DNA of 64,000 nt from Takakia lepidozioides (taxonomy: Eukaryota > Plantae > Bryophyta): NCBI GenBank assembly GCA_030704615.1, contig CM060734.1, positions 54,684,001 through 54,748,000 of the forward strand, written 5' to 3'. Positions within the stretch are counted from its first letter, which is position 1, and every line of letters starts with the position of its first letter. Positions 1,289-60,200 of this stretch are shown here, in pieces. The notes under the pieces are model-generated. The model ran no database searches. It worked only from the letters and a program-made list of their open reading frames with translations, and had not been told where the DNA came from. The position numbers were made by a program, and so were the translations under genes.

Positions 1289-4052
1289 CTAGTGTGACGG
1301 CTGTGGGTCTTTTCCACATCTCATGAGGGCATGAGTGAGCATCATGTTACCACGGCGCAAAGTCTCAGCGGCACGACCCACCAAAGGAACTTTCACTGTT
1401 TTCCTGTTCCACAGTGGCTTGTTGTTCCACCTGTCACACCTCATGCTTTGTGAGATTTCACTGAGGAGAGAACATTTCAATACTTTCAGACTTCAATAAA
1501 ATAAATTCTGCAGTTTTGGGAGATACTATCAATTTATTTTATATTGAAGTCATGGAAAACATGAGTTATCAGAAGGTCAGGTATGCTCATCCACAACAAT
1601 ATGCAGCTAGCAAGATGATCCCATGATATGTAAGGTCAGAAAGGAAAGCTCACCAATCTTCATGGCGCACCACTTTCCCGTCTTCAACCTGCACCCAGAA
1701 GGGCCAATATCATTATATTAATAACGCACATGGGAGGCCTTTGGACAAAGTAGAAATACACCTTAGATCCCCCAATTTGTATGATATTCTGCCAAACATG
1801 AGGAATCGCTAAAAAGAAACCAGTATCTTCCCCTGGACTTGTAGGGGATGAGATAAGGAAATGTCTTGGCCCACTTGTCTGGGTAGCACCTGGAGATTGT
1901 TTCGAAACAATGGAACTTCTTCCGTATCCCTGTCGTAATCTGTGTGAGAATTGCCTTGGAAGTTTGCTCAAAACCCTCATGAGGGGGTTTTATCCTTAGT
2001 GGAAGGCACAACGGAAACCCCAAAGAGCTTCTGGGACAAGAATGTATAACAACAAGAGAGAGAAAAAGAGGAAGTTATGTATTGTGTCCAAAGTGGGGCA
2101 CATGAGAGAGATTGTACTCATAAGACGTTGTTTGCTGTAGCCTTGTGGCCATTGACCCCGCGCCCAGTTTGAGCGGGAACAAAAGGGACAGAACCTACCT
2201 CTGTCAGGGGCTGACGTTGGTAGTAAGACTTACCTCCATATATAGAATTAATCCGGGTTTTCCAGATATCCTCTAGAAATCCCTTCACACAAGCATCAAT
2301 CTGCTGTGTGTGATTTGCCCAAAAACTAGGCCTCAGGAGGGCCTGGGCTTTTGGCTCAGCCTCGAGACTTTCAAAGTTGGTAAACAGGGGTACAGGCACA
2401 ATTCCCTTAATAGATTTGAAGAGAGCGTCTCTTTGGTGAGAGAACCCCGGACAGTGTATCAGAAAATGAATACTGTCTTCAGATTGCCCACACAACGGGC
2501 AATTGCACTCTCCCTTTCCTCTCTGCTTCTGTTTGCTGTTCAAAGGTAGGCTTCCTGCCCTGAGTTTAAATTTCAGTCTAGTGCCGAGAGTGGGTAGACC
2601 CTTGAGGTCATCCAAGCCAGGTCCTTGAGGATCTCTTCTACTCTTTTCTGCCAGGACTTAGCCTGTTTGACAGGGCGGTCCTGTTTCCAAGATATAGAGT
2701 CGATTAACTTAGGATATCTGGTGTTGGGCATATGTTGCAGCTGACCCCACCATCTGACCTTGAATTCATCTCGTCGGGAGCTTAAGGACGGAATGCCAAA
2801 CTCACCCCGAACAGCCACATTGGCTGTTTTGGAGCATGCTGACATACACTCCTTAAGCACCCCCACTTGAATGGATTCTAGAGACTTAGCCTGGTTGGAG
2901 TTATCAACCCATATAGCAGATCCGTACTCCAAGGCAGGTCTAATAACGCGACAAAGCATGGTTTTCTTAACCTCAGAGTTGACCCCTCTGCAGTGGAAAA
3001 ATTTAGTGAGCCCCAGAGCTTTGCCCTTGCCAGTTTGAACAACTTTCCGGATCTGTGCATCCCAATTACAATTGGAGGAGAACTCAACGCCCAGGTAAGT
3101 GTAGGAAGGGAGGACCGGGATCTCTTGGCTACCCCACTGCCACTTAAGATCACTTCCTCCCTCTTCTCTGTCGTTGAATGCTACCACTGCACATTTGCTG
3201 ACATTAGCCTCTAGCCCCCAAAGATCAAAGTATCTCTTCGCGCAATCAATCAACTCCTGGAGATTGGTTGGAGTCTCCCCTATGCCTGCGAAGTCATCCG
3301 CAAACATAAGGGCTGGTATGGTGGTATCACCCACCCTTAACCCAAATCCCTCACTTTCCACATCATCGAGGAGTTGATTGATGAAAACATTGAAGAGCAG
3401 AGGGGAGAGAGTACATCCTTGAGCTACACCTTGGTCTATGTCAAAGAAGTTGGACTTCTGTCCGTTAACAGTGACACAGCTTTTGGTGTGAGCATACAAG
3501 TTGTGGACAACTCTCCACATCTTTCCCTTGATCCCACAAGACCAGAGGCGGAACCATAGGCCATCTCTCCACTGTGTCATAAGCCTTTTTGACATCCAGG
3601 AAAAAAACATAAGTGGGTTTCCCTTCATTTTCCCTTCCCTGGATAATCTGGCTTAGAGTGAAGATATGATCCACACAGCCCCTGTTTCGCCGAAAGCCAG
3701 CTTGGCCTTCGTGGAAACAACCTCTAGACTCCAGATCAACCTCGAGACGAGTACTTGTAACTCTGCAGAATGTCATTGAGAAGCGTGATGCCACGGTAGT
3801 TCCCCGGTTCTTCTCTGTCACCCTTCTTGTATAGATTGACAATGACCCCCTGTCGCCAGCGAAAGGGGATCATTTCAGTCTTCCAGATAAGGTTAAAGAG
3901 GAGAACTAGGGCCTCTATCATGGGATCACCACCGTGCTTGATAAGCTCGTTGACAATACCATCAGGTCCACCAGCTTTATATCCATTTAAATGTTCAATT
4001 GCTTCCACAATCTCAGAAGAACTAATGGGAGCATTATAAGCCATTGAAATAT

Positions 4053-4143
<91 letters not shown>

Positions 4144-6209
4144 AAAATGCCATCAGATGCAATGCTTCACTGATTTCTAGATTGAATCTAACCCCCTAAA
4201 ATTTCACAACATCACCAACACAGCCAGTCTAGAACAGAATGAGATTCGGTGCAGAAAACAGCTCTGGCGTGCTTAAGCAAAGAAGGACCTGTAATGTGAT
4301 GAGGGACTTCATATCAATTGTCTTCCCGGCAACCTTATATCGTTGCAAGTTGTCAAGAGATATCTGTATCATTGACATTCCACGACAAAATTTGAACCCA
4401 CGAGTACTGCTGCAACAGAAGTAAACAGACATGGTCCTTGCCCTTGATGGGCCATTCAAACCCGTAATTTTCCTCCCATCACAGACAGTGTCATGACCTC
4501 ACGGATCTCAATGTTGGTTTTCCACCCACAAACGGTACGAAACTTAAAATTACGTAGTGTTTGTGCACACCACCGACGATGCAGTGAAGGGGATGGTTAA
4601 GGGGATTGTTATTTTTATGATACAAATCATAACAATGCAGCACTGAATAAACTCATTGTCCACCCTTCTTCTCTACCCAACCCCTTCTCTCTCACAAGTC
4701 TCCCTTGCAGATGCCTTGAGTCTCATGTTCTATTGCACATGGTACGAACAATAGAAAAAACAAATCATCTGTTCGATTGAGATATTAATCATTCTTGCAC
4801 ATATCATTTACTCTGTTGCTGACAATAGCTTATGGCCCTTGCTTTCAAAGTTTGAGTAGTGCAACATTTGTCTAGATTTAAAGAACCTTGCCAATGAAGA
4901 AGCCCACATGCACATCCCATATGCCTGAAAACAAAACAGATACCTGGCCAGAGCCTGGTGTTGTTTCCTCCTCTTTGACTGTATACTCCACCATTTGAGC
5001 CTCCTTGAATACCTGCCAGTAGAACCCTCTTATGTCTGTGACCGCTGCTCTGTGATCAATTGCTCCACTCACTATTCACCTTGTCTATGAGGAAATGTGA
5101 AATGATGGTCATGAAAGGATGTATTTTTTCCCCCTCTTGATCCCCATCCCCTGCTGTCCCTTCTCTGCTTGTGGCCACTTTTTGCTTTCGGAAAAGCAGG
5201 CCTAAAATACTACTCTTATGTCAATGAAAACCTCAAAGCATCAACAAAAATTTGAAAGATTGAACACTAAAATGCAAAGAACAGAACTTACACCACCTTA
5301 GGAATGGAGTAGAATGCTGACTTTATTTGTTTCACACTGCAAACAAACACAACAGCTTGTAACGCATGAGAAGTCAGATGTGATAACCTGAACAAATTAG
5401 GCAGAACATTGATTGGATTGTTTTGGCTGCCAGAAAATCCATCTGAATAATGGCCCATTGCATCCCACCTCAGTTCTCTCTCTCCATCTCTCCCCCTCTT
5501 CCATCTCTCTGTCGGTCTATCTGAATGAGGCACTTCATGTTGTGTATTTCTTGTTCTACATTGACCTGGGGGCCCTCGGGACTCCCTGTGGGCATTATAA
5601 AGGGTCATTCTTTCTATGTTCCAAATAAATATTTTCTTCCCTGTAATATCCCCGTAATATCAGTTGTGCGGGCAAGGTCTATGGCCACAAGACTACAACT
5701 TCTCAAATGATAAACATCCAACCTCTCGACATAAATTGTATTGTTCATCATTGTACTTGTAATTGTTTCCTCAGTAAAAATGCCTTGAAGATAATTGAGA
5801 ACTTGGTACCCATGAGCACTCATGAGAGGATCCTCGAAGGTGGCATTGGGAGCATAAACCTCAAAATCAACTGCTGTGGCAGTGCAGTTATATCTGCAAG
5901 CACCCAACCACACATTATTAAAGCTCCAACGTATGGTAACCTGAACAGTGGACATTGAGGCTTTCCACCTGAAAAGCTTCCTTTCGTTCACATGATGTTG
6001 CAGAACTCAGCATTTATGCAGTTGTGGGGAGGGAAAAAGACAGAGAGAGAGACAGAAAGATGTATCCATGGTTAATCTCTGCGAATGTAAGCTATGCTGT
6101 ATTATTGAGGGCTGTATATCTACCATGGAGTAGCTTACAAATTGAGAATGTGGGGAATGATATTCATTCCAAGTCTCCCTAGCTCCTTGCTTTTGTCGAC
6201 ACTGTCCAT
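1289..6209 (-). CDS. NTF2/SnoaL-like family protein (plant NTF2-like), about 171 aa, 7 exons: 6209-6139, 5893-5810, 5336-5297, 5012-4944, 4363-4289, 1688-1654, 1430-1289
   Basis: Exons join in phase across GT-AG introns to give NIIPHILNLYNCTATAVDFEVYAPNATFEDPLMSAHGVKQIKSAFYSIPKVFKE...ISLDNLQRYK...VEDGKVVRHEDWWNNKPL...GKDP. YAPxAxFEDP and HEDWW are typical of plant NTF2-like proteins. Start codon is tentative. Confidence 0.85.
2112..4054 (-). mobile_element. 5'-truncated RTE-X-like LINE, copy 1 (RT domain to C-terminal CxxC/HxxxC), in intron 5 of the NTF2-like gene
   Basis: Frameshifted ORFs with [46 protein letters not shown] and [15 protein letters not shown]. The 3' end reads ...AACGTCTTATGAGTACAA. 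Probable TSD TCTCTCTCA at 2103-2111 and 4055-4063. About 160 bp deleted relative to copy 3. Confidence 0.93.
4056..4140. repeat. (GA)n/(TC)n microsatellite, about 42 units, abutting the 5' junction of LINE copy 1
   Basis: Perfect dinucleotide run seen directly. Confidence 0.98.
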
Positions 6210-7175
6210 TCCTGTCTTGGGCTCTGAGGTGGATGTCTCACTGGAAACAGGCGGTGCTGACTCTCCTTTAGACGCCCCATAACAAGTCACTCAAGTTAGA
6301 GACGAAACTAATTCAATGACTAAACGATATTTCCCAAGTAAAGTGCTTCTTGGGGGCCCTTCATTACTTCAGTAGCATCTAATTTCTAATCCTCATAAGA
6401 TTGTCCTGTAACTATCAGAAGTCCAGGACCCATAATTTGGCAAGGTGAGGCAGATGTGCATTTTCCAGTGATTCCATTCATTGTACATCTTCTAAGATCT
6501 CCTTCAACTGCACTCACCTCTAACACACACACAAACCCTTCCTTCCAAAAAGCCTAAGACATTGCAGTGATAACCTTCTCAAAAATACTACAAAATTTAC
6601 TTTAGTCACATGATGGTGGGTATATCGAAATCCTCTCTCTCCCCCTCCCTCCCTCCCTCTCTCTCCACGATATATTTCATTTATAGGAACAAAAAGAATT
6701 GGTTGCCACGCTTACCAGCAACCCTATCAGCCATGGCGAAGGAGGCAGGGAGGTGTAGAGCGAGCACACCAAAAGGAAGGGAGAAGGATCTTCTCACAGG
6801 CCAGGCAACACCAGCAAATGCACGGGCCTGCAAGACCAACTTGAATGCAAACCGAGGACAGATGGACTTTTGCACTTGCGAGGTGTGAAAGCGTACAGCA
6901 CACTCATCAAAGCTTACTCGTCAAAGCGTGCGTACATCACTCTGCTTTTGCATCAAAAGTGCTTTGCTTTCGTGGCAGACGGTGAGTGCAGGGTGACTCG
7001 TGAGGATTCCGCTCAAGAAGAAGACGAAGGAGGCGACGACAGAGAGGAGCGAACGACAAATGAACGAACGAATGAGTGCAGCTGAGTGTTTTTAGGGTTG
7101 TTGTTCTCTTGTGAGTATTTTGTGGCGATGCTGGAGGGTTAAGTTTATTCCTTCTGATCTCTCCGCAAACGTACC

Positions 7176-10100
7176 ATGGGGCGCAGTGAGTCCATGGACT
7201 TGGTCGAGCATGATGCTAAGGAGAAGGAGAAGGAGAAGGAGAAAGAGCGTCGGAAGGCTCGTGAAAAAGAGAAGGATCGAATCAGAGAGAAGGAGAAGGA
7301 GAAGGAGCGGGATCGAGATCGAGAGCGCGACCGAGACAAGGAGAGAGGGAAGGAGAAGGGGGCAGAGAAAGAGAAGGACAGGAGTAGGGACAAGGGCCGA
7401 GAGAAAGAGAAGGAAAGAAGTAAGAACCGAGATAAGGATAAGGTTCACGAAAAGGATGGCGGCAATGCGAAGGAGAGGGACCAGGAATCTGAGTTGACAA
7501 AGAAAGACAAGCTGAAGGATTTGGAGCGCGAAAAGCACAGTGAAAAAGAGAAGGATCAGGGTTTAGAATTGAGAAGAAAAGAAAGAACAAAAGAGGCGGA
7601 GCGAGCTAAGGATAAGGACGCAGACAAACACAGTGAAAAGGAGAGGGATGAGGAGTTGGACATGAAGAAAAAAGATAGACCAAAGGAGTCGGAGCGAGCT
7701 AAGGACAGGGACGTAGACAGGCACACCGAAAAGGAGAGGGACCGGGAGTTAGAGTCGAAGAAAAAAGAGAGATCGAAAGAGTCGGAGCGAGCAAAGGATA
7801 AGGACACAGACAAGCACGCCGAAAAGGAGAGGAACCAGGATGTTGAGGCGAAGAAACGGGACAGATCAAAGGATTTGGAGCGAGCTAAGGTCAAGGACAC
7901 AGATAAGCACACCGAAAAGGAGAGGGACCAGGAGTTGGAGTTGAGGAAAAAAGACAGGGTCAAGGAATTGGAGCGAGATAAGGACAAGGCAACAGATAAG
8001 CACACGGAAAACGAGAGGGACCAGGAGGTAGAGGTGAAGAAAAAAGAGAGATCAAAGGAGTTGGAGCGAGATAAAACTAAGGACAGAGAGAAGCACAGTG
8101 AAAAAGATAAGGCTATGGATAAAGAGAAAGAGAAACGTGATCGGGAGAAAGAAAAAGAGAAAGAGAGAGAGAAGGAAAGGGAAAAGGAGAAGGCGAAGGA
8201 GAGAGAGAGAGAGAGGGAGCGGGAGAAGGAAAGAGAAAGGGAAAGGGAGAAGGACAGGGAGAGGCATCGGGCCCGGCAGAAAGAGCGAGAGAGGGACAGA
8301 GTACTGGAAAGAGAGAAGGACAGGGACAGAGATGGGGACAGGGAGAAGGAGAGAGAACATGATGGGGAGAAAAAGGATAGAGACAGAGAGAAGGATGATA
8401 AGGATAGTACACGAAAGGAATCTGATCAACCTCCAATCTCCGCTACTGAACTTGCAGAGCGTGTTTCCAGGTATGTTACCTTACCTTCCTCTCTAAATTG
8501 CTCACATTGAGAGGCACAGTTGCTCATGGTGCAAGGAATTTAGGGTTTCTTTCCTGGTTGCTGCATATCATCAATAACATTTGCTCATGTAAATGTAGTA
8601 CAGGTTTTTGCTGGTTCCATTGTACTTCAACATGTTGTGTACGTATGTTATACCCCATGTGGATCAGGCGATTGGCCCGAATCATGAAGGGAGTTGTATA
8701 GGGCACTTGAATGCAGAGATTGAACTACTGTATGCAAGTTGTGTCCTCTTCATTCACTTGCTCTTGCTGTTTTACATCATTTTCTCCAGGATGCAGGAGG
8801 AACGTAAAAAAGGTAATGCTGAACAGAGATCAGGGCGGAAAGCACCATCTGAGAAGCATGAGGAAGTTGATGATGTTGCCACCTGGGTCAACAAGAATAG
8901 GAAGCTTGAAGAGCAAAGGAAAATGGAGGAAAAGGGAAAAGCTGCACGCATGGCTAGGTTAATTGCGGAGCGGGTTAGTGCCCTGTTGCTCCACTATCTC
9001 TCTTAGTTGCACTGTTAGGATTTACAGGACGCTTCATCTTTGATTTCTTGAATGAAGCCTTACATCAGTAAAATTTATAACGAGGAGCAGTATTTTTACG
9101 GATTATGGAATATCTGCTTTGTGAGCTGCATCAATATCTATCGTAGTTGACTGTGCCAGTAAGCTCACCTTAATGAGCGCATGTCCACATTCCCATCCTT
9201 GTCCTATGTATCCGGATATGTGATTTGTTGCATCATAAGTAACTTGGCAACTCATAGCACCACTGCTGGTTGTTTTCAGGATAATGGAGACGAAGATGAA
9301 AGTGATGACGACCTCCGCCCCAGCGGATACGGGGGAAGTAAGTTGCAATTCTGTTCTTTGGGCTTTCATCTTATGGATGTAACAGAGGAGGACTGGTTGT
9401 CTCTCAGAACTGTTTAAGAGGCACCCAATCTATGGAACGGATCTTTTTACGATTTCAATAGGTTGAAGTCCAATTGATGTTCACTGGTAGGTTCTGTGGC
9501 AGAGTGCTGAGCAGAGTTTTCCAACATCATCTTTGACTGAATAACATCTAGGAGCCCCACGAAGGCCTGTGTTTAGATTGGGAAGTATCTGTTTGTTGTT
9601 GAACTTTAGTGTGTTATAAGTAGGGTTCTGGTCCTACCTCAAATTAAGAGAATCTGTGGAGAGCGGTTTCTGTGTAGAAGTACTGTTTTACTCCACTGCA
9701 ATGTTGACACACTGGATATATCTGAAAGGATGGTAAACTGATGGGCTTTCTGGGCATGGGATATATCATGTGTTTTGCAGAGGACCTGGCAGGCTTGAAA
9801 GTCCGACATGGCCTCGACAAAGTGATGGAAGGTGGGGCAGTGATGCTCACACTGAAAGACGCCAACATTCTTACTGACGGCGGTGTGAATGAAGGTAAGA
9901 TTACTCTGAATACTCTTCCATACTGGATTTGTTACCCCTCAGAAAGTAGGACAGGGAGGTATGGGTGATTCCATTGGTTGTGGTGGAACATTTCTTGCTA
10001 CTTTAAGTTTTCCTGGTGGTGTTCACTCAAGACATAGATGGAACTGTGGGGAATCAACTCATTGGAATCTTAGTCTTGAAGTTTGTCAGGAGAGGATTTA

Positions 10101-23500: not shown

Positions 23501-26500
23501 TATTTGCCAGCAGTTGGCTTTTCTTTCCCTGTGCTGGTCAATCTCTCCCTTATTGCTTATCATTACCCTCCATGTACCTGAATCCTTCTTGAGAATCAAG
23601 GAAAATCTGCAATTTTACTCGTGGATGATTGTGGGTATGCGTGGCAGGTGGATGATGGAGTGATACGGGAAATTTTTCCGGCGTTGCTCCAACCTGATTG
23701 GGATGTGTTAATAGCACACTTTCTTGGCGTGGTACTTCTCTGAAGACCAGGCATGCTAGCTCTGCCATGATGCCCCCTGCCTTCTGGCATGTGTTTTCAG
23801 AGTCACAATCATAATTTGGGGGCCACTTCAGGTGTGGAGGTTGTTCTACTTACAGAACATCATAGGATTCTCGTCCATGAAGCACTGACCAATCCTAGGC
23901 CCTTTCTTAGACCTGTCTACAGGCGGAGAATAGCAGATCCTGTATGATTCTATTATTGTGAGTCCTATGTGAGTCCAGGTTCCTTTGTCATATTTCTGGA
24001 GCTCTCTTTATTTAGTGTCTGGATGACAGGACTCGACCTCGGGAAGATTTTCTGAACCCTGCAGTAGGCAGGACTTTAAGGATCTGAGAAATGTCTGACC
24101 AATACGAGTATCTGAAAGCAAAATATGCAGTATCAAAGTGCCATACATTTCGATGCTGTGGCCAACCAAGCTAGGTCCACGGTGAGATTTATGTGAGACA
24201 TCCACTTTCCCCAATGAGACTTCCCATGTTGAATATAAAACATGAAGGAGATGAAGCTGTATCTTGTTGCGGATGGGTATGTTATGTGTGGGATCAGTTT
24301 ATTGTCTTCTCCCGAACAGAAAGGCCCAGAGCAAAGGAGGTCATGTGTATTTCAACCTGTCATCACAGGGTGGAAGTTCTCAAAAGCAGTTTCATGTTTT
24401 TTGGACAGGACCATGTGGGCCACATTTTTGGAGTTGAGTCACCACTGATGGTCAGTAAGCTGGAGCAGTACAATAGTGTCATTGAGGTACTCTCTCTGGC
24501 AAACAACTTCGTATGAGGACATTCTCTCTCTCTCTCTGGCCTCCTGCTCTAGGAAGAGAACTAAGGGTGGGGACTTCAACTTGAAAGTTTCTAACCAGTT
24601 TGATGCCCTGGATGAGGTTGATACCAAGCAACCACACAGACTAGCTGGCCCTATGTGTGCTGAGTCTGTCGAGTATGTCCAGGCCTTTCAAGAGGCTCTC
24701 CCCCACTTTGTCCATTTGCTCCAAGATCTTCAGTGTCGCTCTGGCAATGCAAGAAATGAAGTCGAAAGAGCGGTGGATTCTTGGGAGAGTTTCGTCTCCT
24801 CTGTGGCTGACAAGGTCAGTGGGAGGAAACTAATTGTCTGGTAAAGCTGTTAATTGGTGGACCAATGAGATCAAACTCAAGATAGCGGAGTCCTCTGTAA
24901 AGAGTGCAATTTGAAAGTCAACAAAGAATTGTGGGCTAGGTACTACCAGATCCGCAAAGATATCAATCAGCTTGTAAGGTCTCAGAAGAACTTATATTGG
25001 GACAAGTTATACTGATAAACTCAAACCACCGTGGTGGTAATGACAAGAGATTCTGGTTGGCCCTTCAACATTTGTACAAGCCAAAAACTTGTCAGCAAGT
25101 ACAAGCGCTGAGGACTACCAAGGGTGCAGTGGTTACTTCAACGGTTGACATTGTCAAAACCTTTGAAACTCACTACAGTATCCTTGGCAGAAATTCTAAG
25201 TCTAACAGTGAGGGGTCTTCTGAAGAATGGAAGGACAATTGAAAAAACTGTTCCTCTGATTCAAGACAGCCCTGATGAACTGGAGTATATTTCAAAGGCT
25301 TACAACATTCCCATTAGTTCTTCTGAGATTGTGGAAGCAATTGATCATTTAAACGGATATAAAGCTGGTGGACCTGATGGCATAGTCAACAAGCTTGTCA
25401 AGCACTGTGGCGATCCCATAATAGAGGCCCTTTCGCTGGCGACAGGGGGTCTTTGTCAATCTACACGAGAAAGTTGACAGAGAAGAGCCGGGGAATATAC
25501 GAGGCATCATGCTTCTCAATGCAGTTGGCAAGATATTTTGCAATGTTATAAGTACTTGTCTCGAGGTTGATCTGGAGTCTAGACGTTGTTTCCATGAAGG
25601 CCAAGCTGGCTTTCGGAGAACAGGGGCTGTGTGGATCATATCTTCCCTCTAAGCCAGATTATCCAGGGAAACCCACTATGTCTTTTTCTTGGATGTCGAA
25701 AAGACTTATGACATTGTGGAGAGATGGTCTACGGCTCCGACTCTGGTCATCTGGGATCAAGGGAAGGGTGTGAAGAGTGGTCCATAACTTGTATGCTCAC
25801 ACCAAAAGCTGTGTCACTGTCTAACTTCTTTGACATAGACCAAGGTGTAGTTGAAGGATGTACCTTCTCCCCTCTTCTTTTCAATGTTTCTATCAGTCAA
25901 CTCCTCGAGGATGTGGAAATTGAGGGATTTGAGTGAAGGGTGGGTGATGCATACTAGCCCTTATGTTTGCAGATGACTTCGCAGGTGTAGGGGAGACTCC
26001 ATCCAATCTTCAGGAGTTGCGAAGGGATACTTTGACCTTTTGGGGGCTAGAGGGCTAACGTCACTAAATGCGCAGTGGTGGCATTCAATGACCGAGGGGA
26101 GGGAGGAGGCAATCTTCAATGGTGAAGCCAAGAGATTCCTGTCCTCCCTTCCTACACATACCTTGGCGTTGAGTTTTCCTCCAACTGTAATTGGGATGCA
26201 CATATTCCAAAAGTTGTTCAATCTGGCAAGCGCAAAGCATTGGGTCCCACCATCTTTTCCACTGCAGGGGGATCAACTCTGAAGTCAAAAAAACCATGCT
26301 TTGCCGTGTTATTAGGCCTGCCTTGGAGTACTCTGCAGTGTGGGTTGATAACCCCAACCAGGTTAAGTCTCGGGTGCCTAAGGAGTGCATGTCAGCATGC
26401 TCCAAAACGGCTAATGTGGCTGTTTGGGGTGAGTTTGGCACCGCTCCCTTAAGCTCCCAACGAGATGAATTCAAGGTCAGATGGTGGGATCACCCTGTCG

Positions 26501-29500
26501 AATAGGCTAAGTCCTGGCGGAAGAGGGTAGAAGAGATTTTCAAGGATCTGAATCTAAGTCCGCAAGTCTTAACCCTGCTGCATAAATCTGACTTAGAGGC
26601 CGTAGTGTCCAAAGCAATGTCTGTTGCCAGGAAATTTTCTGATGAAAATGAAGTTAGGCAGAATACTTCCCTGAACTTCTTTCCAGTCTGTGACATGGTG
26701 GAGGACATCATGGATGACCTCAAGGGTTTACCCACTCTCTGCACTAGACTGAAATTTAAACTCGGGTCAGGAAGGAACAGCAAACAGATGCAGCAGAGGA
26801 AAGGGGGATTACAAATGCCCGTTGTGCTGGCAACCTGAAGACAATATTCATTTTCTGATTCATTGTCCTGGGTACGCTCACTAGAGAGACGCCCTCTTCA
26901 AATCCATCAAGGGATTTGTGCCTGTACCTCTGTTTACCAACTTTGCAAATCTCGAGGCTGAGGCAAAAGCCCAGGCCCTTTTGATGCTTGTGTAAAGGGA
27001 TTTCTAGAGGATATCTGGAAAACTTGGAGCAATTGTCTGTTCCAGGGTAAGTCATACTAGCGGCGTCAGCCCCTGACAACAGTAGCTCTGCCCCTTTGTG
27101 TTCCTCTCAAATTGGGCACAGGGTCAGTGGCCACAAGGCTACAGCAAACAGCGTCTTATTAGCACATTCTCTGGCCTCCTGCATCCCATGTCCCTTGGGG
27201 GCTAGGCCCAGAAGGCTATGTGTAGCCAATGTCAATTAGGTCATCGATTACATCTCTCCCTCCTTTTCTCTTTTCACACAATAGTTGGACTTTCAGTGCA
27301 ACCTTTCTCAAGGATCGGTCAATGAGTACATTCTCTCTCTTTCTAACTCAAATCCAGGCTTCGGCAAACGTCTTATGAATACAATCTAATCTCAAATCCA
27401 GAGATTGTCTTTTAAGTGGTGCTTTTGTCATAGAAGTCATGAATGTTCCATGTTGACATGAAAGTTGACTTGCAGGAGGTGGTGGCAGTGCTGAAGAAAG
27501 AGTCTGGTCCCGCGGGCTTGCATGAAGACACTCTCCTGGTAGTCATGGGGGATCACGGGCAGACCCTGCATGGTGACCATGGCGGGGGCACTTCTGAAGA
27601 GGTTCTCTGTGTGTCTTCCACCAAAACCATGTCTTTCTTAAGTTCGGGGCATCTTGCTACAACAAGATAAAACGAATTGTTACAGTCCTTCTTTCTGTCT
27701 TTGCTGTTGCAGGGTAACTTTTGGTTGAATGCAATTGGCTAATACAGTGTTGGATGGATTTGTCAGGTAGAGACAGCACTGTTTGCAATGGGTTTGAGGA
27801 ATCCCCCAAGTTCACTACCACCAGACCTGCGATCTTCTCCTTGCAATAGGGCATTGGTACAGCCATTTTCCTTGTATTTATTGAATCAGGACTGCCAAGT
27901 TGAAGGGGTGTGGTTGAGGTCATATTGCATATCAGCTTTTGTATATTAGGCTGAAGACCACCTTTTTTGTGTTGTGTCTATCAGGATGGTCAAGATGGTG
28001 ACTGTATCAGCACATTTCCCCAGGTTGGTCACTTTGCAAATTCTCTCATTGTTTGCTTTGAAAGGGCGGTGTATGTCCGATGTATGAAATCCATTGCATG
28101 ATTCTTAAGCACTTCTTTCCTCGACAAGATATGATGAATGTCTGGTGGATCATAAAGTTTGTCCAGATTCTTACACCCGCACTAGATAAGGCCTAAGAGC
28201 AGTGGGGTTGTCTTGACAGTTGGACTTCTCTGCAACACTTGCAGCCCTCCTTGGCTTGCCCTTACCATATGGCAGGTGAATTCCAACTACTGACCAGGTG
28301 GTGATATGAGATGGCTTGAAAATGATTAAACCTCTGTTTGGTTCTTATTTGTTATATATCTTCCAGATTGGGAAGGCCATTAATTGCAGCCTAGTAATTT
28401 CCAAACTCGTCTTTCCTGCAGTGTTGGACGGGTGAATCCAGAGTTGTATGCCTTAGCTGCCGGCACTTGGCCCTCAACAAGCACTGCAGTAGCGTACAAA
28501 GGTCACGGTCTTCCTTTGGTTCTTGACTGGATGGAGCGTTACAAAGATGTGCTGTGCATCAATAGCTGGCAGGTACATGTTCAGCATCCGGTGACCCAGA
28601 GAATTTGTTGTACTTCCAACTATACCCAAGCATTGGCTTTCTCTCTTATTTGTTGCTGTCATTCCTTCAATAGCAAGGTATTATGAAGCCTTTGCAGGTG
28701 TTTTGAAGCAGATGATGCATTTCTGCATCTGGTATTTGGATGAAGTTGTAAGATAAGGACATGCAGCTGAGTCTGTTGTTGATACAATGTCATTCACAGT
28801 TTAATATGAACATGGCAATATAAAATAGGTCCTGCAGAACCATTTCATCCTACTTCAAATCAAGCAGTGTTTCTGGAATGGTAAAACCATACTTTTTTCC
28901 CTGAAGAATTTGCTCTCTGTCTTCACTTGGGGTCTGATTGAAGTAACTGACCTAATCCATTGGCTGTGTACAGGTGCAGCGGTACCTTGAAGCTTATTCA
29001 GCATCCACAATACAAGGATTTCAAGAAACAGACTTCTCATATGTTCAGAACCTATATGCAAATGCGCAGTCCCTGGCCTCAAATGCTGTACAGGCCCTCA
29101 AATGCTCTATGCTGAGTGTGTCTCCAAATAATTTTGGCACAGCAGCGAATGGTTCCAACATAGATGCAGAATTGCTAACCCAGAAGAGCAGAGGGCTGAC
29201 AAAACAGATACTACACTACTTCACTTATCTGGATGCAGCTGCTGATTTGGCACGAGCCCAGTGGACCCAATTTGAGGATGATTGGATGGCGGTGGGGCTC
29301 TCCCTTTTGGGTGCATCTGTAGTGGTGCACTTGGTTGCTCTCTCAAGAACCATGGGGCTATCAATTTGGTTGCCTGAAACATCACAAAGGGAACCAGAAG
29401 TGTGCAACCGACAACCGGATGAGTTTTTTGCTAGTTTGTTTCCCTTCAAACGAATGCTCCTGGGTTGTGGACTTACAGGGCTCGTCACTACTGGTGCGCA

Positions 29501-32500: not shown

Positions 32501-35100
32501 ATTTTCACTCAACTTGTTTTTAAGGACAAATGTTGTTCTGCTCATGAGTATATCTTCCTTTCTCACTCTCAATCTCTCTGTCTCATGTTTAGAGTTGTCA
32601 CTGTTAACGGACAGAAGTCTAACTTCTTTGACATAGACCAAGGTGTAGCTCAAGGATGTACTCTCTCCCCTCTGCTCTTCAATGTTTTCATCAATCAACT
32701 CCTCGAGGATGTGGAAAGTGAGGGATTTGGGTTAAGGGTGGGTGATACCACCATACCAGCCCTTATGTTTGCGGATGACTTCGCAGGCATAAGGGAGACT
32801 CCGACCAATCTCCAGGAGTTGATTGATTGCGCGAAGAGATACTTTGATCTTTGAGGGCTAGAGGCTAATGTCAGCAAATGTGCAGTGGTAGCATTCAACG
32901 ACAGAGGAGAGGGAGGAAGTGATCTTAAGTGGCAGTGGGGTAGTCAAGAGATCCCGGTCCTCCCTTCCTACACTTACCTGGGCGTTGAGTTCTCCTCCAA
33001 TTGTAATTGGGATGCACATATCCGGAAAGTTGTTCAAACTGGCAAGGGCAAAGCTCTGGGGCTCACTAAATTTTTCCACTGCAGAGGGGTCACTCTGAGG
33101 TTAAGAAAACCATGCTTTGTCGCGTTATTAGACCTGCCTTGGAGTACGGATCTGCTATATGGGTTGATAACTCCAACCAGGCTAAGTCTCTAGAATCCAT
33201 TCAAGTGGGGGTGCTTAAGGAGTGTATGTCAGCATGCTCCAAAACAGCCAATGTGGCTGTTCGGGGTGAGTTTGGCATGCCGTCCTTAAGCTTCCGACGA
33301 GATGAATTCAAGGTCAGATGGTGGGGTCAGCTGCAACATATGCCCAACACCAGATATCCTAAGTTAATCGACTCTATATCTTGGAAACAGGACCCCCTGT
33401 CAAACAGGCTAAGTCCTGGCAGAAGAGAGTAGAAGAGATCCTCAAGGACCTGGACCTGGATCCGCAAGTCTTGACCCTGCTGGATAAATCTGACTTAGAG
33501 GCTGTAGTGTCCTCAGCCATGTCTGTTGCCATGAGATTGTCTGATGAAAATGAAGTTAGGCAGAAAACTTCCCTGAACTTGTTTCCAGTCTGTGACATGG
33601 GGGAGGACATCTTGGATGACCTCAAGGGTCTACCCACTCTCGGCACTAGACTGAAATTTAAACTCAGGGCAGGAAACCTACCTTTGAACAGCAAACAGAA
33701 TCAGAGAGGAAAGGGAGAGTGCAATTGCCCGTTGTGTGGGCAATCTGAAGACAGTATTCATTTTCTGATACACTGTCCGGGGTTCTCTCACCAAAGAGAC
33801 GCTCTCTTCAAATCTATTAAGGGTATTGTGCCTGTATCCCTGTTTACCAACTTTGAAAGTCTCGAGGCTGAGCCAAAAGCCCAGGCCCTCCTGAGGCCTA
33901 GTTTTTGGGCAAAGACAGCAGATTGATGCTTGTGTGAAGGGATTTCTCTAGGATATCTGGAAAACCCGGTTTAATTCTATATATGGAGGTAAGTCTTACT
34001 ACCAACGTCAGCCCCTGACAGAGGTAGGTTCTGTCCCTTTTGTTCCCGCTCAAACTGGGCGCGGGGTCGATGGCCACAAGGCTACGACAAACAACGTCTT
34101 ATGAGTACAATCTGTCTCATGTTTAAGTCCACTAACCGGAGTGAGCCCCTCAGAAAGGTAGTGTCTGTTCCCTCTTGTTCTGCCCAAACTGGGCGCAGGG
34201 TCTATGGCCACAAGGCTCGCCAAACATTCTGTCTCTCTCACCACTGGTTTCCAGATGTTCTGCTATTTGTTGTAAATTGCAACCCTCTAACACAAATTCA
34301 TGGAAGGGATTGTGATCAGCTGTATGTGACAGCTATGGCTATGAAGGTTAAGATTTAAAACTGTGGAACCCCAGTAGTACTCCAGAAGTTGGTATCTGGC
34401 AGCTCCAAAGTTTATGTCAACTAACATGCATTGGCAATGATGGGCAGTAAGTACTGCCCATCACTGGTGAGCAGTAAATCACTTTTGCCTCTGGATTTGC
34501 TGGTAAATCTGAGTGCGTGTGTGTGGTTAGCTCTGGTGGAGAATATATGAAGGTGTGGAGAGTCTGACTCATTTTGGGGGAGGGGCAGGTTTATGTTTCA
34601 TACGGACTTGTTTGTACCATTCTCATGACCATGAGCATGGCGGCTGTCACATTGCATCGGCGGCATCTCATGGTTTCTTATTTTACACCCTTTTCTGTTT
34701 CAATTTAGAGAGGTGAATCATTATGGGAATGTTTGCTACTTATTGCTACGCTGACATTATGTTCACACTCATCAGCCCTAGTTCAACTGAAATTAAATTA
34801 GGTGGGTCACAAAGGTGGCCTTATTACTGGTCACATACAGAGTTTGCAGTTATCCTCAATGACCTTTGGATAATGATGGCTAAGTTATGGTCTGCTTGCT
34901 TGCAGGGTTTATGTAAACTTTGTTAATAGGAAGATTGGGCTTGGTGGATGCAGGTATGGGGTTTATTCGCACCAAAATACGTCTTTGATGCAGTGGGCCT
35001 TTTGATTGTCGATATTTTTATTGTATTAGCAATGTCATTTTATCTCTTTCTCCAGCCAGGGAGAGAGACAGAGACTTCGAACTCAAACATAACAGTTTGA
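20538..35100 (+). CDS. PIGO: GPI ethanolamine phosphate transferase 3 (PIG-O/Gpi13), about 23 exons
   Basis: [101 protein letters not shown], many TM segments and C-terminal [20 protein letters not shown] at 35098-35100. Confidence 0.95.
24498..24522 (+). mobile_element. 25-bp 3'-terminal stub of the RTE-X-like LINE, 11 nt inside a PIGO intron
   Basis: GGCAAACAACTTCGTATGAGGACAT matches the family 3' end GGCAAACAACGTCTTATGAGTACAT at 22/25 and is flanked by TCTCTCT on both sides. Confidence 0.75.
24548..27167 (+). mobile_element. RTE-X-like LINE, copy 2 (longest, older, many indels), in a PIGO intron
   Basis: Same RT motifs as copy 1 plus about 700 bp of further upstream ORF2. Perfect 15-bp TSD TCTCTGGCCTCCTGC at 24533-24547 and 27168-27182. 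Confidence 0.93.
27358..27384 (+). mobile_element. 27-bp LINE micro-insertion with its own TSD
   Basis: GCTTCGGCAAACGTCTTATGAATACAA (family 3' end), flanked by TCTAACTCAAATCCAG (27342-27357) and TCTAATCTCAAATCCAG (27385-27401). Confidence 0.85.
32592..34110 (+). mobile_element. RTE-X-like LINE, copy 3 (5'-truncated, near-identical to copy 1), in a PIGO intron
   Basis: RT motifs [19 protein letters not shown] and the zinc motif. Ends ATGAGTACAA. Perfect 15-bp TSD TCTGTCTCATGTTTA at 32577-32591 and 34111-34125. Confidence 0.95.
34135..34228 (+). mobile_element. Older 3' fragment (about 95 bp) of the same LINE directly downstream of copy 3
   Basis: ...GCCCCTCAGAAAGGTAG..CAAACTGGGCGCAGGGTCTATGGCCACAAGGCT.. 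aligns to the family 3' end and is followed by TCTGTCTCTCTC. It lacks the ATGAGTACA terminus and no TSD was identified. Confidence 0.85.
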
Positions 35101-36213
35101 TGAATATGACCATTTGCCTACAAACATGTCAGGTACAATTTGGGCATCGGTTTGTCCTGTTGCTCAAGAAATATTTCTTGAATTTCACTGAGCACTTAGG
35201 TCAACCTGTCATTTTGTACTATTAAGGTATTTTCATGCGTGTCCAGTTTTGCTGACACCTGATCACTGTGGGAAGTCAAACTTTCCTCGTGGAAAGAGAC
35301 TACTACTTCTCTGCGAAGGATTATATAAGCTTAACACTCGAAGATGCGATGTAATCCATGTCCAGGACGTGCATTTGTAGGAATGTGCACAAATCAAGTC
35401 TTCAAATCCGCCAGTTAAACTACCAGTCTCCCCTGATCACAAGAAACCATCCCTTTCCATCTGGAAAGAGATGAACAGCCTTTCCAGAGCTGAAACTCTT
35501 AAATATATAAGCTTGAACAAATTGCAGCTGTTGTGAATCAGAGAATGGCAGCAACTTGACAATCCACAAACTGGGGATCTCCAGGATTTCAACATTCTGG
35601 GTGTCCCCATTTGAATGCTCTCGCATTTTCCCTTCCAAGTTGTCAAATCGATTGATAGTTTTGAAGTACTGCATGGTAGGGTCTGTTCCAAGGTACATGG
35701 GCTGGGTTCATAACTGCTATTTGATATGGAAGGGCCCGACATAGCAGCTGGCTTGACTCATGGTGAGCCTTCCCTTGTTATGGTTGGGCAATGATTGAAT
35801 GATTGCTCATACCTTATAATTATATCAAGCACTCTATCTTACAAGAACAATAAATGTACAAATGCAATACAGTCTACAGTATATATGTGTTACAGGTGAC
35901 ATAGATATTTAACACATAGATACATCTTTCGAAAGTCACACTTAGAGATCAAACACTCATACACATAGCTTGAAAACCAGAATCTAACACTTAAAAAAGT
36001 TTAAATAATCCCCATGTTAAGGAAAATTAAAGAGCTAACAGGTTTAATTGATATATGTCATGAATTCAAGTTGTCTTGCTATACGTATATGCATTTGAAC
36101 AAAAATTAACACTTATTGTACCTTAATAATTAACACTTATCTGAAAGGGGGCTAATTTATCTGAAAGGGGGTCATTTAGGAAAGGAGGTCGGGAGTAAAC
36201 AACATCATAACAC

Positions 36214-54480: not shown

Positions 54481-54714
54481 AAAACTCTACACTAACACTT
54501 TTAATTGAGCTACATGATGGATACATATGTCATGGGTGTGGGACCACCGAGCTTTCAAAATGATAGAAAATACTGGTAGCATTTTCGCAAAAAAGAAGAA
54601 AAAAAACACAAACTCAAATGGGTGTTGCACATCTTTGATATACCCATGTCTATGTTCGTGGGGTGAGATGAGACAGTCTCTAGTCATTCGAAAAGAGAGT
54701 CGAATAGTCCAATC

Positions 54715-55358: not shown

Positions 55359-55479
55359 TCTCTCTCTCTCTCTCCCTACATAAATTTGATACACAAAGCA
55401 TCGACATAAGATATTCATCTATAATTAATAGGAATGATACAAATACACAAACATGTAAGAATATATATACTATACTTCC

Positions 55480-56530: not shown

Positions 56531-57286
56531 ACGGGAAGGCCTCAGCTGTTCTGGGTTCAGCTCTTTCATTGTCTCCTTTCACTGTTCCTTGTCCTAGTTT
56601 CATTGTGTTTATGTCTTAGACATTGCTTCTGTTGGTTGTCTGTTGTTCCCAGTGCGGCTCTCACAAGGTGGTACCCGGATGATCACACGCGGTTTTCGGG
56701 CTTGTTCGGCTTGGGGGCACTGATTGGTGTGCTCCAATGTCATTGTTCCCAGTCATGACAATCCATGTCTCTTTTCTGTCTTAAACCTACTGAAACTTCT
56801 TCCTCAAAGCATTATCTATTGAAGAACCACCAAGGAAGATGCTTTAGCTGAGGAGACTGCTAAGAAAATAAGATACTGAGGAGAAAAAATCATTACATCA
56901 CAGCAATAATTGCAGATCGCAACATACCTCAGTGAAACAATGGAAGAACGATGTGAGGTTGCAGACTTCAATGAAATTTTCAAGAGCAAACCAGAATACC
57001 GAGAGGCTTTGCAACACCACTAAAGCAACATGCCTTTGAATTCGCCAAAATTGAATACATTCCAGTGGGTGACTTCCTGACCAATTGATTGTTCGTTGAC
57101 TAGAAACTTGTTCGAACTGCACCCGCAATTCGCGCTGCCGAAGAACATACATTGATTCTAGGCTCAAAATGAAATTCCAGGCCTACCGCTAAACACACTC
57201 CAGGACCAGCAAGTCATTTTACAACACTGAATTGAAACAACACCCTCACAAAAAAATATGAACCTGGACAAAGCTCAGTGAGAGGA

Positions 57287-60200
57287 TTAGCTGCCACCCC
57301 GACCTCTTCCTCTACTCCGACCCCTACCACGGCCACCTCGGCCTCCATGGGTCCTATCACTTTTCAAGCCTAGGGATTGAATGCCCCGTTTATGGGGACC
57401 CCTACCTCCTCGGCCCCTAGATCCATCCTTGTCTGAGCTGCTTCTGGGAATGAAAGTGAGTTGCCGGCTTCCTCCATGGCCTCTAACCTCTTCCCCAAAA
57501 GTAGATGCACTATGATCCCATTGCCCTTTAGCTGCTGCTGCTGCTACTCTTTCCTCCAGCGGCAGGCTCCGTTCAGCAGCCAATGAGATTTGGTTCTTAA
57601 ATGCTTGGGCGTGCACATCGTCCTTCGCTTCATACAGCCTGTCATGACAAACAGGCAAGGTTTAGTTTGTAGCAATTTTGCACCCATATTTCTACTATAG
57701 AAGTCCATGCTCATTTCTCATGAAGGTGAAAACACAGTAAAACCACCTAGATCATTGTAAAAACTCATAAAGACTGAATCTCGGTAGTTGTTTGACAACC
57801 CAGAGAACATGCTGCATGCTGCAGGTCTAGAGAAGGTCAAATTAGTCTTGCTGAAGACACGATGATGGCCCTCTTGAACAAGCAGCAAGCTCTACTGCCA
57901 AAATCAGGGGTTAATTGCAGAGAAGATTTAAGCGTGAGCCTTTTTCTTGCTATAGCCTAGTAGAAGAGAGAGGTAGAGGGAGACACTAAATTTTTTTGGG
58001 GAGTACATACCTCGGCTCTGATGCTTTCCCAGTCCTCCCTCCTTTCTCCCCCTTGCGCCGGTCCTGTTTTGGTTTGTGCTTTGGAGAAACTCTCACATCC
58101 TCATCAGAAGATGAGCTGCCAACATAGTCATCTTGCTTGTTCTCGAGGGCTGTCTCTCTTTCACTCTCACTCTCGGACACCAGGTCAAAATGTTCGTTTA
58201 CCAAAGAGGTCTTCCTTTTCTCCTTGTTGGGGTGCAATGTCTGATACTCAGGTGCTTCCTCGTCGACCTCAAAAGCCTAACAGAAGGTTGTCATGTCAGT
58301 ATCAAAAAAAGAAGCGGTCTCAAGTGCTGGATTTTTAGCTCACCAAACACAAATATGGTGCATCACTGGGACGTGCATGACCTTTTTGATGGAAATTTGA
58401 GGAGACGTTCACTCTGGCAGAGAGAAAAACATTGAAATCTCTCAGAGCCATTTAGCAATGAGAATATTTGATTCATCTTTCTGGACATTAATGTATGCAT
58501 CAAATCTCTGCTGTTCCTACATATTTCGATACAGTATATACCAGTAAAAGATGAATGTATTACCTGGTCTGTGAACATAGCTGAGAAACGCTCATCCTTC
58601 AGAAGATTGAGACGTGCTTTCTTCCGTCTGCGAGCAGGCCCCTCCTGTACATTGACCTCAGGGGTCGAAGTTGAGAGCTCCTGTCTGCCGTCCCTGTCAG
58701 CATCACCCGCAGCAAGCAGACGAGCAGCCAGCTCTCGGTTCACCTTAGGCAGTTTCTTCTTCACCTGTAGGCATATGCCACTCCACCCCTTTTGTCAAAC
58801 TATCTAAACAAGTACTAGAATATGTACCAAAAACAACAGAAATCACCTCTTCAACAGAAGACGGCGAGAACTGCCGTGGCTATTTTGCTCGGGCACACTG
58901 CAGATGGTCTGCCCTTTAGTTGCTCTTGACCTACATAAATTTGTGCTAAGTAGTCCCACCCAGTCGGGGCATGCGTAAAGCCCTCTGAAATTACTCACCT
59001 ACAGACTTTCAGTACACTAGGTGGAAAATTAAAGAGTCAAAGTGCCCTATCGCACTGAAAAGCTTAACACATTATCATTCCTCTCATCACATCAGTGTAA
59101 AGCCACCCCATCACAGCAGGTAACTCGGACACCCTTTGTGGGTAACACTAACCAGGGTCCACATGAAAAATATGCCTGTCAGAAGCTCATAGGTGTGGCT
59201 TTTGCATCCCAGCACAGTAAATACATATCATATCGACGACTGACTAAGTGCAGGTTTACTCTATGAAGATCAATGCACAATTACAACCGGGTAGAGTAGG
59301 GGTCACCGTGATGCGTGTGGCTCGTTCGGCATCCAGTTTCTCACGAACACGTTGTTGCCTATATTCCTCATATGCAAAAGGGTCCGCCAATGACTTAGCC
59401 TGGTTCCCCCAGTTTTCCACTTCATCATTCAAGAAAGGCAATAATTCTCGTGGCTAAGTTCCTGTCTATAAGCAGTTTCCCACTTCTTAAAGAATCATAG
59501 TTCCCATAAGAGACCTGGGGACAGCCATAGAGCAATACAGCTTTGGTAAATGGCTAATATAAACAACTTACAGAATTTGTCTGTGACACTGCAATAATTA
59601 CCATAGTCATCTAATTGATTGTAATGTGATGACCCGAAAAGAGAGAACTTCCTTAGGAAAACATAGTAAAAAGTGCGAGGACATCAGAGGGAGCATGCAA
59701 TGGTTATCTACAGAGACACTGTTAAGGGCACAGTTAGCGGAACCAAAATTGCCAGAGGAAAGTAATGATGATCCAGTAACAAGGGAACAAGTGTTAAATT
59801 GAAGGCTGACTTATCATACTGAAAGTAGGATGTTGAGTTGAGCACTAGAGAGAGCGATGAATGCTTGCACCCTGCTCCAAGTTTGAAGTAGCACAAAGGA
59901 AAAAGAAAATGTACCCATAAGACGTTGTTTGCCGTAGCTTTGTGGCCACATGTACTCATAATAATGTACTCACAGCACAAAGGAAAAAGAGTGGTATGGA
60001 GAGCAAGACCTTAGCATAGAGGCGGTGGTCAATGAAGAAGCCATGCATGTAGGCACGCAGCAGGTTGGTGCCAAGCAAATTTGTCAGGTTTAGTTGATCC
60101 AAGTCGTCACGGGTGACAAACTTGTAGTCATCATAGATTGTGTTCTGACCTGCCTCTTCTAACTCCTCCTGTTCCACACATGAACCAAATCTTGGTTAGA

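Follow-up and report, generated by a model that had tools for sequence, protein, structure and literature searches.

Several insertions of one LINE family lie in gene introns of the Takakia window (the whole 64,000-nt stretch of DNA analyzed), which raises the question of whether the element seeks transcribed introns or whether its target sequence places and orients it. The reading favored here, with a probability of roughly 0.6, is that this is an abundant, tail-less LINE targeting TC tracts, and that the target strand, not transcription, sets the sense direction of its intronic copies. The choice of target is the probable reason that most copies in the window are both intronic and sense.

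LINE copies within the window

An earlier note on this DNA had recognized seven insertions of a single family (A to G in the list below), and these were upheld in family and position by self-BLASTN identities, a shared 3′ terminus, and RVT_1 matches. They comprise three 5′-truncated, frameshifted LINE copies (A, B, and C) and four short 3′ fragments. Copies A and C share 96.7 to 98.3% identity, and copy B is ∼80% identical to both. The terminal 23-mer of the LINE was matched five times in the window, with 0 matches expected. Copies of 24 to 2620 nt end at one 3′ terminus and vary in 5′ truncation, a trait of APE-type LINEs, and most of the seven insertions carry target site duplications (TSDs) of 9 to 17 nt. 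The elements and their flanks are as follows.

2103-2111, minus strand: 3′ TSD copy of copy A, TCTCTCTCA, beside a (TC)n run
2112..4054, minus strand: copy A, a LINE truncated at its 5′ end, with ∼97-98% identity to copy C; has RT followed by a C-terminal CX2CX7HX4C motif, an internal deletion of ∼150 nt, and a frameshift
4055..4145, no strand assigned: target tract of copy A, (GA)n on the plus strand and hence (TC)n on the element strand; abuts the 5′ end of copy A and contains the 5′ TSD copy
5634..5700, plus strand: fragment I, an old 3′-end fragment ending ...GGCCACAAGACTACAAC, then TTCT; overlooked in the earlier note
24499..24522, plus strand: fragment F, the last 24 nt of the element, 12 nt past the PIGO-like donor (GT 24487), within a CTCTCTCTGG tract
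24533-24547 and 27168-27182, plus strand: TSD of copy B, TCTCTGGCCTCCTGC, 15 nt, read directly
24548..27167, plus strand: copy B, older subfamily, with many frameshifts; 5′ truncation just after the endonuclease region
27320..27331, plus strand: possible remnant H, CAATGAGTACAT then TCTCTCTC; precedes fragment E
27342-27357 and 27385-27401, plus strand: TSD of fragment E, TCTAACTCAAATCCAG, read directly
27358..27384, plus strand: fragment E, a 27-nt 3′ end
32577-32591 and 34111-34125, plus strand: TSD of copy C, TCTGTCTCATGTTTA, 15 nt, read directly
32592..34110, plus strand: copy C, young subfamily, frameshifted, 5′ truncation within the RT; in the PIGO-like intron 32420-34588
34137..34228, plus strand: fragment G, a 3′ region without the last ∼20 nt, stacked head to tail behind copy C; then TCTGTCTCTCTC
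59907..59973, minus strand: insert D, 3′ ends stacked three deep within a single 17-nt TSD
59974-59990 and 59890-59906, minus strand: TSD of insert D, TCTTTTTCCTTTGTGCT, 17 nt, starting 19 nt after the NOL10 donor

F and B both entered a single tract, and stacks are present at C-G and H-E. Matches to the motif at 13878 and 38519 appear fortuitous, and a diverged 3′-end-like stretch on the minus strand at 45855-45900 was not significant (nhmmer; E value, 0.7). Metagenome scans with the LINE 3′ terminus gave no match.

Coding features, abundance, and expression

A 351-amino-acid ORF of copy A matched RVT_1 (E value, 4.8e−16), identifying a non-LTR-type RT. Library proteins matching the LINE RT at an E value of ≤1e−10 numbered 8553. 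The best match of this intact frame in either protein library was only ∼51% identical; the best named matches were from Ectocarpus. Relatives combine Exo_endo_phos with RVT_1, some also with zf-RVT, and full-length relatives at 33 to 39% identity carry Exo_endo_phos. No endonuclease is seen in the window because the 5′ truncation of every copy there lies 3′ of that region. The TGA stop codon lies inside ...TTATGAGTACAA, 6 nt before the 3′ end, and no A-run follows, so that the element lacks a poly(A) tail and has a very short 3′ untranslated region (UTR). It is plausible that this tail-less family is APE-type and RTE/RTE-X-like; its features and nearest relatives plausibly point to RTE/RTE-X and away from Tx1. 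Classical RTE elements are not known to carry the CX2CX7HX4C motif. In a possible conserved 3′ hairpin (GTCAG-CCC-CTGAC), fragment G has a single compensatory change; the comparison covers five sequences, too few for a conclusion.

Summed DNA depth over copy C reached 0.8 to 1.5 million against 64 for single-copy sequence (X4) and 0.2 to 0.8 million against 28 (X1). The family is therefore very abundant, its summed depth being roughly 10^4 times that of a single copy. RNA contigs near-identical to copy C (1 difference in 182 to 193 nt) had depths of 279 to 390, compared with 9.9 for the PIGO-like exons, and the family is probably still transcribed.

Host genes and introns

Four host introns had been claimed, of which the two in a PIGO-like gene and the one in NOL10 could be confirmed, while that of copy A is unverified. 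The intron holding copy B runs from GT 24487 to AG 27475 with the reading frame kept; for copy C, an RNA contig leaves just 486 nt for 31313-34952; and the exons flanking insert D align to human NOL10 residues 358-418 and 411-451. Around copy A, Pfam searches of eight candidate exon frames yielded one weak DUF2358 match (E value, 0.08), and a homologue search for a DUF2358/NTF2-like gene there returned nothing. The PIGO-like exons, searched singly against Pfam and PDB, gave weak alkaline-phosphatase-type matches only; a protein atlas pointed to Phosphodiest clusters (0.84), which serves as a lead only. The window also contains a 775-amino-acid PPR ORF whose best matches, from the lycophyte Diphasiastrum, are ∼50% identical and at paralogue level.

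The first insertions had also been described as lying 10 to 240 nt after the splice donor. The figures for the confirmed introns are right (10, 157, and 19 nt) but carry no information, since before insertion these introns measured just ∼280 to 520 nt. Fragment E sits at ∼70% of the length of its intron, and splice acceptors lie 75 to 360 nt downstream of the insertions.

Target site preference

Two earlier claims about the target were borne out. Every readable TSD starts with TCT within a TC-rich tract, all being pyrimidine-rich, and the proposed semi-site-specific TC target can be stated as a semispecific, strand-specific preference for TCT in TC-rich DNA, seen both in the window and at hundreds of other copies. 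TCT stands directly behind the element end at 7/7 window junctions, and it originates from the target, as the 5′ TSD copies contain TCT too. Outside the window, contigs assembled from the plant's own DNA runs were used: behind the element end, the loose ends of 340 to 370 DNA contigs per run read W-TCT and then C/T-rich sequence. Those behind position 34109 included TTCTTTTTCC, TTCTTTTCTCC, TTTTCTCTTTC, and TTCTCTCTTCC (140 to 145 DNA contigs per run), and those behind 34113, after AATCT, included CTTCCTTTCTC, CTTTCTCTCTC, CTTCATTCTTT, and CTCCATCTTTT (202 to 221 contigs).

As in Kibi elements, insertions enter TC repeats with a constant orientation to the repeat strand, which is seen at all seven window junctions and in the loose-end consensus. 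The family is not restricted to true (TC)n microsatellites, as the targets TCTTTTTCCTTTGTGCT (of D), TCTGTCTCATGTTTA (of C), and TCTAACTCAAATCCAG (of E) are no more than pyrimidine-rich.

Orientation and location relative to genes

All insertions had been described as co-oriented with the host transcript, which fails at fragment I. This eighth fragment (a 19-mer match with 0 mismatches, of which 0.01 would be expected) lies on the plus strand, antisense within the minus-strand DUF2358-like gene and downstream of the exon that has Pfam support. The strand on which the fragment reads is locally rich in TC, and TTCT follows the fragment's end. Fragment I is thus antisense to the gene yet runs along the TC-rich strand, which indicates that direction follows the tract and not transcription.

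Target-like tracts were scored by a rough rule of our own, TCT in at least 12 of 15 pyrimidines. In the verified introns, whose sense strand is 34% T and 24% A, they were distributed 8 sense to 0 antisense; combined with a strand-specific target, this yields sense orientation with no link to transcription. Over whole gene spans the tract strand is not biased to sense (NOL10, 19:19; DUF2358-like gene, 5:8). Tract density was 3.0 per kb in the verified introns versus a window average of 4.9 per kb, and 124/281 tracts in the window fall outside the six recognized genes. No copies were found outside gene spans in the window by nhmmer or tblastn. Because intron tract density is not raised and no copy lies outside genes, tract availability alone does not predict that all sites are genic. 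The location of all 5-6 sites in gene spans has a P value of about 0.02 to 0.04 at best, given six recognized genes and incomplete annotation, so that the evidence for a restriction of the copies to genes is suggestive only. Taken with the 8:0 tract asymmetry, the antisense fragment, and one unverified intron, these values do not support "intron-seeking" and "sense-oriented," the terms of the earlier note, as properties of the element.

Alternative explanations

A true preference for transcribed DNA would draw the integration machinery to transcribed gene bodies, with priming on the template strand and an excess of sense copies beyond that expected from tracts; (TC)n.(GA)n structures formed under transcription, or tethering to the machinery of transcription or splicing, could for instance provide the route. 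In keeping with this, every one of the 5-6 sites is genic although the 124 tracts outside recognized genes offered targets elsewhere, the introns are not enriched in tracts, and the family is well represented among RNA contigs. However, the independent sites number just 4-6 and had been seen before the hypothesis was formed, an antisense intronic fragment exists, regions counted as outside genes may contain unrecognized genes, and the tract asymmetry already accounts for orientation within introns. In Marchantia, moreover, LINE/RTE-X peaks around centromeres and not in genes (10.1101/827881). We therefore regard such a preference as a tentative alternative, and it is similarly doubtful that, genome-wide, the LINE integrates preferentially in transcribed introns, in sense, beyond what the strand of TC tracts predicts.

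Less probable still, and in our view unlikely, is that insertion is indifferent to genes and that survival is unequal, with intergenic DNA turning over fast and sense intronic copies being tolerated. Antisense copies would be lost through disturbed splicing or pairing with abundant sense LINE RNA, and the tolerated sense copies would carry no poly(A) or splice signals. The copies differ in age, with A and C young (97-98% identical) and B (∼80%) and the degraded I old, which would fit such a history, as would the old and short state of the sole antisense fragment and an element with a minimal 3′ UTR and without a poly(A) tail. Yet an old antisense fragment did survive, and the selection bias on mammalian intronic LINEs and ERVs runs the opposite way, to antisense (PMC3192792, PMC1794541). 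An introner-like element, whose insertions themselves made the introns, could be suspected from the LINE share of the host introns (∼2.7 of 3.0 kb for copy B and ∼1.65 of 2.17 kb for copy C) but is highly improbable. It is contradicted by the anatomy: splice sites lie 10 to 157 nt outside the elements, which neither supply nor abut them, and ∼280 to 520 nt of unrelated intron sequence is left. With its best RT match at only ∼51% identity, the family shows no link to known introners.

Proposed mechanism

Target-strand control of direction, the preferred reading, builds on the observed family, TSDs, TCT/pyrimidine target, and abundance, on the three intron loci, and on the tract strand asymmetry. 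From these we infer a nick site, a priming step, and a role of selection. Integration would pick 5′-Y|TCT-3′, read on the element strand, in pyrimidine-rich (TC) tracts, which would place the first nick after ...AGA-3′ on the purine-rich strand. The nicked purine-strand end could then prime reverse transcription at the fixed 3′ terminus, ...GGCCACAAGGCTACGGCAAACAACGTCTTATGAGTACA plus A or T, which spans the ORF end and just beyond. A second nick would fall mostly 15 to 17 nt away, and most copies are 5′ truncated. With a target recognized on a single strand, element direction would be set by the strand bearing the TC tract; T-rich intron sense strands carry such tracts, so that intronic copies would be mostly sense. 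Purine-rich exons would bear the tract on the antisense strand, with insertions there presumably removed by selection. Since the TSD duplicates the target, later insertions could adjoin earlier ones and form head-to-tail stacks.

Comparison with known retroelements

APE-type LINEs targeting (TC)n are already known as Kibi of fish, and Koshi, Waldo, Mino, and Dong are further microsatellite-targeting LINEs (PMC3812793). Kibi elements are the closest known kind: both they and the Takakia family, itself probably APE-type, are LINEs that enter TC repeats with their direction fixed by the repeat strand and regenerate their target, so that arrays can form. The Takakia family differs in its land plant host, in features and relatives that suggest RTE/RTE-X rather than Tx1, in a summed read depth some 10^4-fold that of single-copy sequence, and in a looser target, TCT in any pyrimidine-rich tract (e.g., TCTTTTTCC or TCTGTCTCA) and not only long microsatellites.

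RTEX families occur in brown algae (PMC12477816, PMC4421812), RTE-X being the most abundant LINE class in Ectocarpus (PMC12477816), and Marchantia has a LINE/RTE-X class (10.1101/827881). Shared with RTE/RTE-X are the missing poly(A), the minimal 3′ UTR, frequent 5′ truncation, high copy number, and relatives with APE plus RT, whereas in the Takakia family the CX2CX7HX4C motif follows the RT. Its window copies lie in gene bodies, in contrast to the RTE-X of Marchantia, which is reported around centromeres (10.1101/827881). Mammalian L1 and ERV insertions in introns are biased toward antisense (PMC3192792, PMC1794541). The Takakia copies are likewise intronic retroelements with nonrandom orientation; their bias is opposite, and its simplest account is the target strand and not the selective removal of poly(A) or splice signals.

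Implications

If only the target preference holds, the family would correspond in a plant, and in a different LINE clade, to the (TC)n-targeting elements of fish. Through this LINE, introns have become up to about ten-fold larger, those of the PIGO-like gene having grown from ∼0.28 to 3.0 kb and from ∼0.5 to 2.2 kb, and its ordered head-to-tail stacks are a natural record of insertion order. Should an intron and sense bias prove real after correction for tract strand and abundance, this would point to a link between LINE integration and transcription, which would be unusual for LINEs. Preferential sense-intron integration, if true, would mean template-strand-primed reverse transcription coupled to transcription, and intron growth in this plant would be driven to a large extent, and directionally, by the family, with an orientation bias opposite to that of mammalian L1.

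Copies and anatomy of the LINE family

Comparison of the window with itself recovered the following members of a LINE family.

LINE copies identified by self-comparison of the window
2103-4060, - strand, copy A (long, 5′ truncated)
about 24548-27172, + strand, copy B (long, 5′ truncated)
32592-34119, + strand, copy C (long, 5′ truncated)
34137-34226, short 3′ piece (G)
59904-59948, short 3′ piece (D)

Copies A and C shared 96.7 to 98.3% identity, and copy B was ∼80% identical to both. In the window, five matches with up to three mismatches (0 expected) were obtained for the 23-nt terminus that the earlier note had put forward, and a shorter terminal motif added tiny fragments at 24512, 27321, and 27374 (pieces F, H, and E, respectively). 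The seven insertions described in that note are real, lie where it placed them, and form one family; its observation is largely right, apart from one overlooked antisense fragment and one tentative intron. All three long copies were 5′ truncated and carried frameshifts. In copy A, RVT_1 was identified in a 351-aa ORF (E value, 4.8e−16), with a CX2CX7HX4C motif region downstream; the stop codon, TGA within ...TTATGAGTACAA, lies 6 nt from the element end, and the 3′ end has no poly(A) tail. A hairpin (GTCAG-CCC-CTGAC) was seen ∼90 nt before the element end, with pairing kept in fragment G via a C-G to G-C change, in only five sequences, too few to rely on. Insert D (59907-59973, - strand) contained three stacked 3′ ends (GTGAGTACATT, ATTATGAGTACAT, and then a 43-nt tail) within a single 17-nt TSD, which suggests repeated restarts of reverse transcription.

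An additional fragment was identified at 5634-5700 (+), where the 19-mer GGTCNATGGCCACAAGRCT matched with 0 mismatches (0.01 expected); it terminates in ...ACTACAAC, followed by TTCT. Profile searches of the whole window, first with the three copies and afterwards with the 3′ ends, revealed no further copies outside gene spans, and tblastn searches of the window using family proteins and relatives identified no other RT remnants. At 45855-45900 (-), ATGGCCACGAGGCTTATGACGAGCAAAGTGTAATTAAGTAC followed by TCCTGTCTCTCC resembled a 3′ end, since diverged, from this family or a sister family, at a nonsignificant level (nhmmer E value, 0.7); this stretch lies near same-strand ORFs with an OSB-like WWDN motif.

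The family looks RTE/RTE-X-like rather than Tx1-like, a putative placement. Relatives with 33 to 51% identity encoded APE plus RT, and some also zf-RVT. The best named protein matches were from Ectocarpus, in which RTE-X is the most abundant LINE class (PMC12477816). In Marchantia, LINE/RTE-X elements peak around centromeres (10.1101/827881), which gives no hint of a clade-wide intron preference.

Abundance and presence in RNA

A search gave four DNA runs of the probable source sample and two RNA runs, the latter (X5 and X6) taken as RNA because their contigs were spliced. DNA runs X4 and X1 and both RNA runs were compared with 29200-35150, counting matches from 80% likeness. Summed depth, which is not copy number, was 64 (X4) and 28 (X1) in single-copy parts and 0.8 to 1.5 million (X4) and 0.2 to 0.8 million (X1) in copy C. 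This ratio of ∼10^4 in both runs, again not a copy number, indicates that the family is very abundant. In X5 and X6, RNA contigs with one difference in 182 to 193 nt from the RT region of copy C reached a depth of 279 to 390, compared with 9.9 for PIGO-like exons (28 to 39 times), so the RNA includes the young subfamily. The family occurs in RNA chiefly as 3′ pieces. Depth of the element 3′ end relative to the 5′ part was ∼30 times in RNA and ∼1.5 times in DNA.

Host genes and introns

Exons of the PIGO-like gene and NOL10 were searched singly. Insert D lies between two NOL10 exons on the same strand, its TSD starting 19 nt past the donor; exon 59959-60195 (-) aligned with human NOL10 residues 358 to 418 (E value, 3e−19) and the following exon, 59259-59453 (-), with residues 411 to 451. 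In the PIGO-like gene, the exon preceding copy B (...NSVIE) ends at 24486 and is followed by GT, the acceptor (...ttgcag) ends at 27475, and the reading frame resumes as EVVAVLKK...GDHG. Domain matches of this gene were weak (Sulfatase and Phosphodiest; E values, 0.04 to 0.1), and the protein atlas led to Phosphodiest clusters. In record 23 of X6, which is an RNA contig, positions 723 to 1303 corresponded to 30732-31312 and positions 39 to 236 to 34953-35150. Only 486 nt of this contig cover 3,640 genomic letters, so the 1.5-kb copy C was spliced out; the exons as read in this region (about 226 + 178 + 84 nt) agree with the 486 nt. Upstream of copy A, one exon had a weak DUF2358 match (E value, 0.08), pointing to a minus-strand gene, and no downstream exon could be shown by a domain search of exon frames or a homologue search. 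With an in-frame stop at 4232, copy A would fall within the 3′ UTR or further downstream. The proposed intronic location thus holds for copies B and C and insert D, on exon or RNA evidence, and is tentative for copy A.

Other genes were also recognized. DCP2 (47231-48725, +; box A E value, 1e−20, plus NUDIX) had no LINE fragments found in it. An intronless 775-aa PLS-type PPR gene (41474-43801, -) carried internal repeats of about 300 nt, and its best matches were Diphasiastrum (lycophyte) proteins, about 50% identical. Tandem repeats at 7470-8107 (+), 70 to 78% identical with offsets mostly of about 93, 186, 279, or 372 nt, lie within an Arg/Glu/Asp-rich 450-aa ORF (stop to stop, 7158-8507) upstream of SART-1-matching ORFs.

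Target sequence and proposed insertion mechanism

Every TSD listed in the earlier note could be read directly in the window, each starting with TCT. The 5′ TSD copy also has TCT, so these nucleotides derive from the target and not the element. Loose ends of contigs in X4 and X1 extended this to other copies: behind ...GAGTACA, 140 to 145 DNA contigs per run read on as TTCTCTCTTCC, TTTTCTCTTTC, and similar, and another 202 to 221 matched through AATCT, followed by CTTCATTCTTT, CTCCATCTTTT, and similar. Other copies also provided the tail absent from fragment G (ACGGCAAACAACGTCTTATGAGTACATTCT). These junctions show a genome-wide rule in which the element end is followed by A or T, TCT, and then pyrimidine-rich sequence, and targeting of TCT/TC tracts is well supported. 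APE LINEs targeting TC microsatellites are known from fish, the Kibi elements (PMC3812793), whereas the target of the Takakia family is looser. Copy A adjoins, at its 5′ end, a run of approximately 45 GA units (4055-4145) that greatly exceeds the tracts at other sites in length and may be either a true microsatellite target or a postinsertion tract expansion.

The data fit target-primed reverse transcription, in which the first nick would fall after AGA in the purine-rich strand (a putative nick site), synthesis would be primed at a fixed 3′ end of the RNA situated in coding sequence, and the second nick would mostly lie 15 to 17 nt from the first.

Sense orientation and intron location

The earlier note contrasted sense-oriented insertion here with mammalian introns, where L1 and ERV insertions indeed show antisense bias (PMC3192792, PMC1794541). 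Its statement that all insertions were co-oriented with their hosts fails, as fragment 5634-5700, within the minus-strand DUF2358-like gene downstream of the DUF2358-supported exon, is antisense. Local TC-richness on the fragment's own strand fits a tract that sets direction. With elements masked and target-like tracts defined by a TCT in a 15-nt stretch with 12 or more pyrimidines, 281 tracts were found in 57.4 kb. Verified introns (2.6 kb non-LINE; sense strand, 34% T and 24% A) held eight sense and no antisense tracts, and antisense tracts were mostly in purine-rich coding sequence, including 26 TC tracts on the antisense strand of the Arg/Glu-rich SART-1 ORF, none with a LINE. Given this 8:0 ratio, sense orientation is expected of a strand-specific target once insertion is intronic, and is most simply a by-product of tract location.

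Intron location is less well explained by tracts than orientation. Tract density was lower in introns (3.0 per kb) than the window mean (4.9 per kb), and 124 of the 281 tracts lay outside the six recognized genes (DUF2358-like, SART-1, PIGO-like, a PPR, DCP2, and NOL10; 53% of unmasked sequence). Counting stacks (F+B, H+E, C+G, and the D triple) as reinsertions into a regenerated target gave five or six independent sites; the probability of all lying inside genes was about 0.02 to 0.04, a lower bound given that further genes may exist, for a post hoc hypothesis. Distance to the donor was uninformative, since preinsertion introns were short (about 280, 520, and 450 nt) and sites were spread over their length (at about 4%, 68%, 30%, and 4%). 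Intron seeking by the family is at most a possibility.
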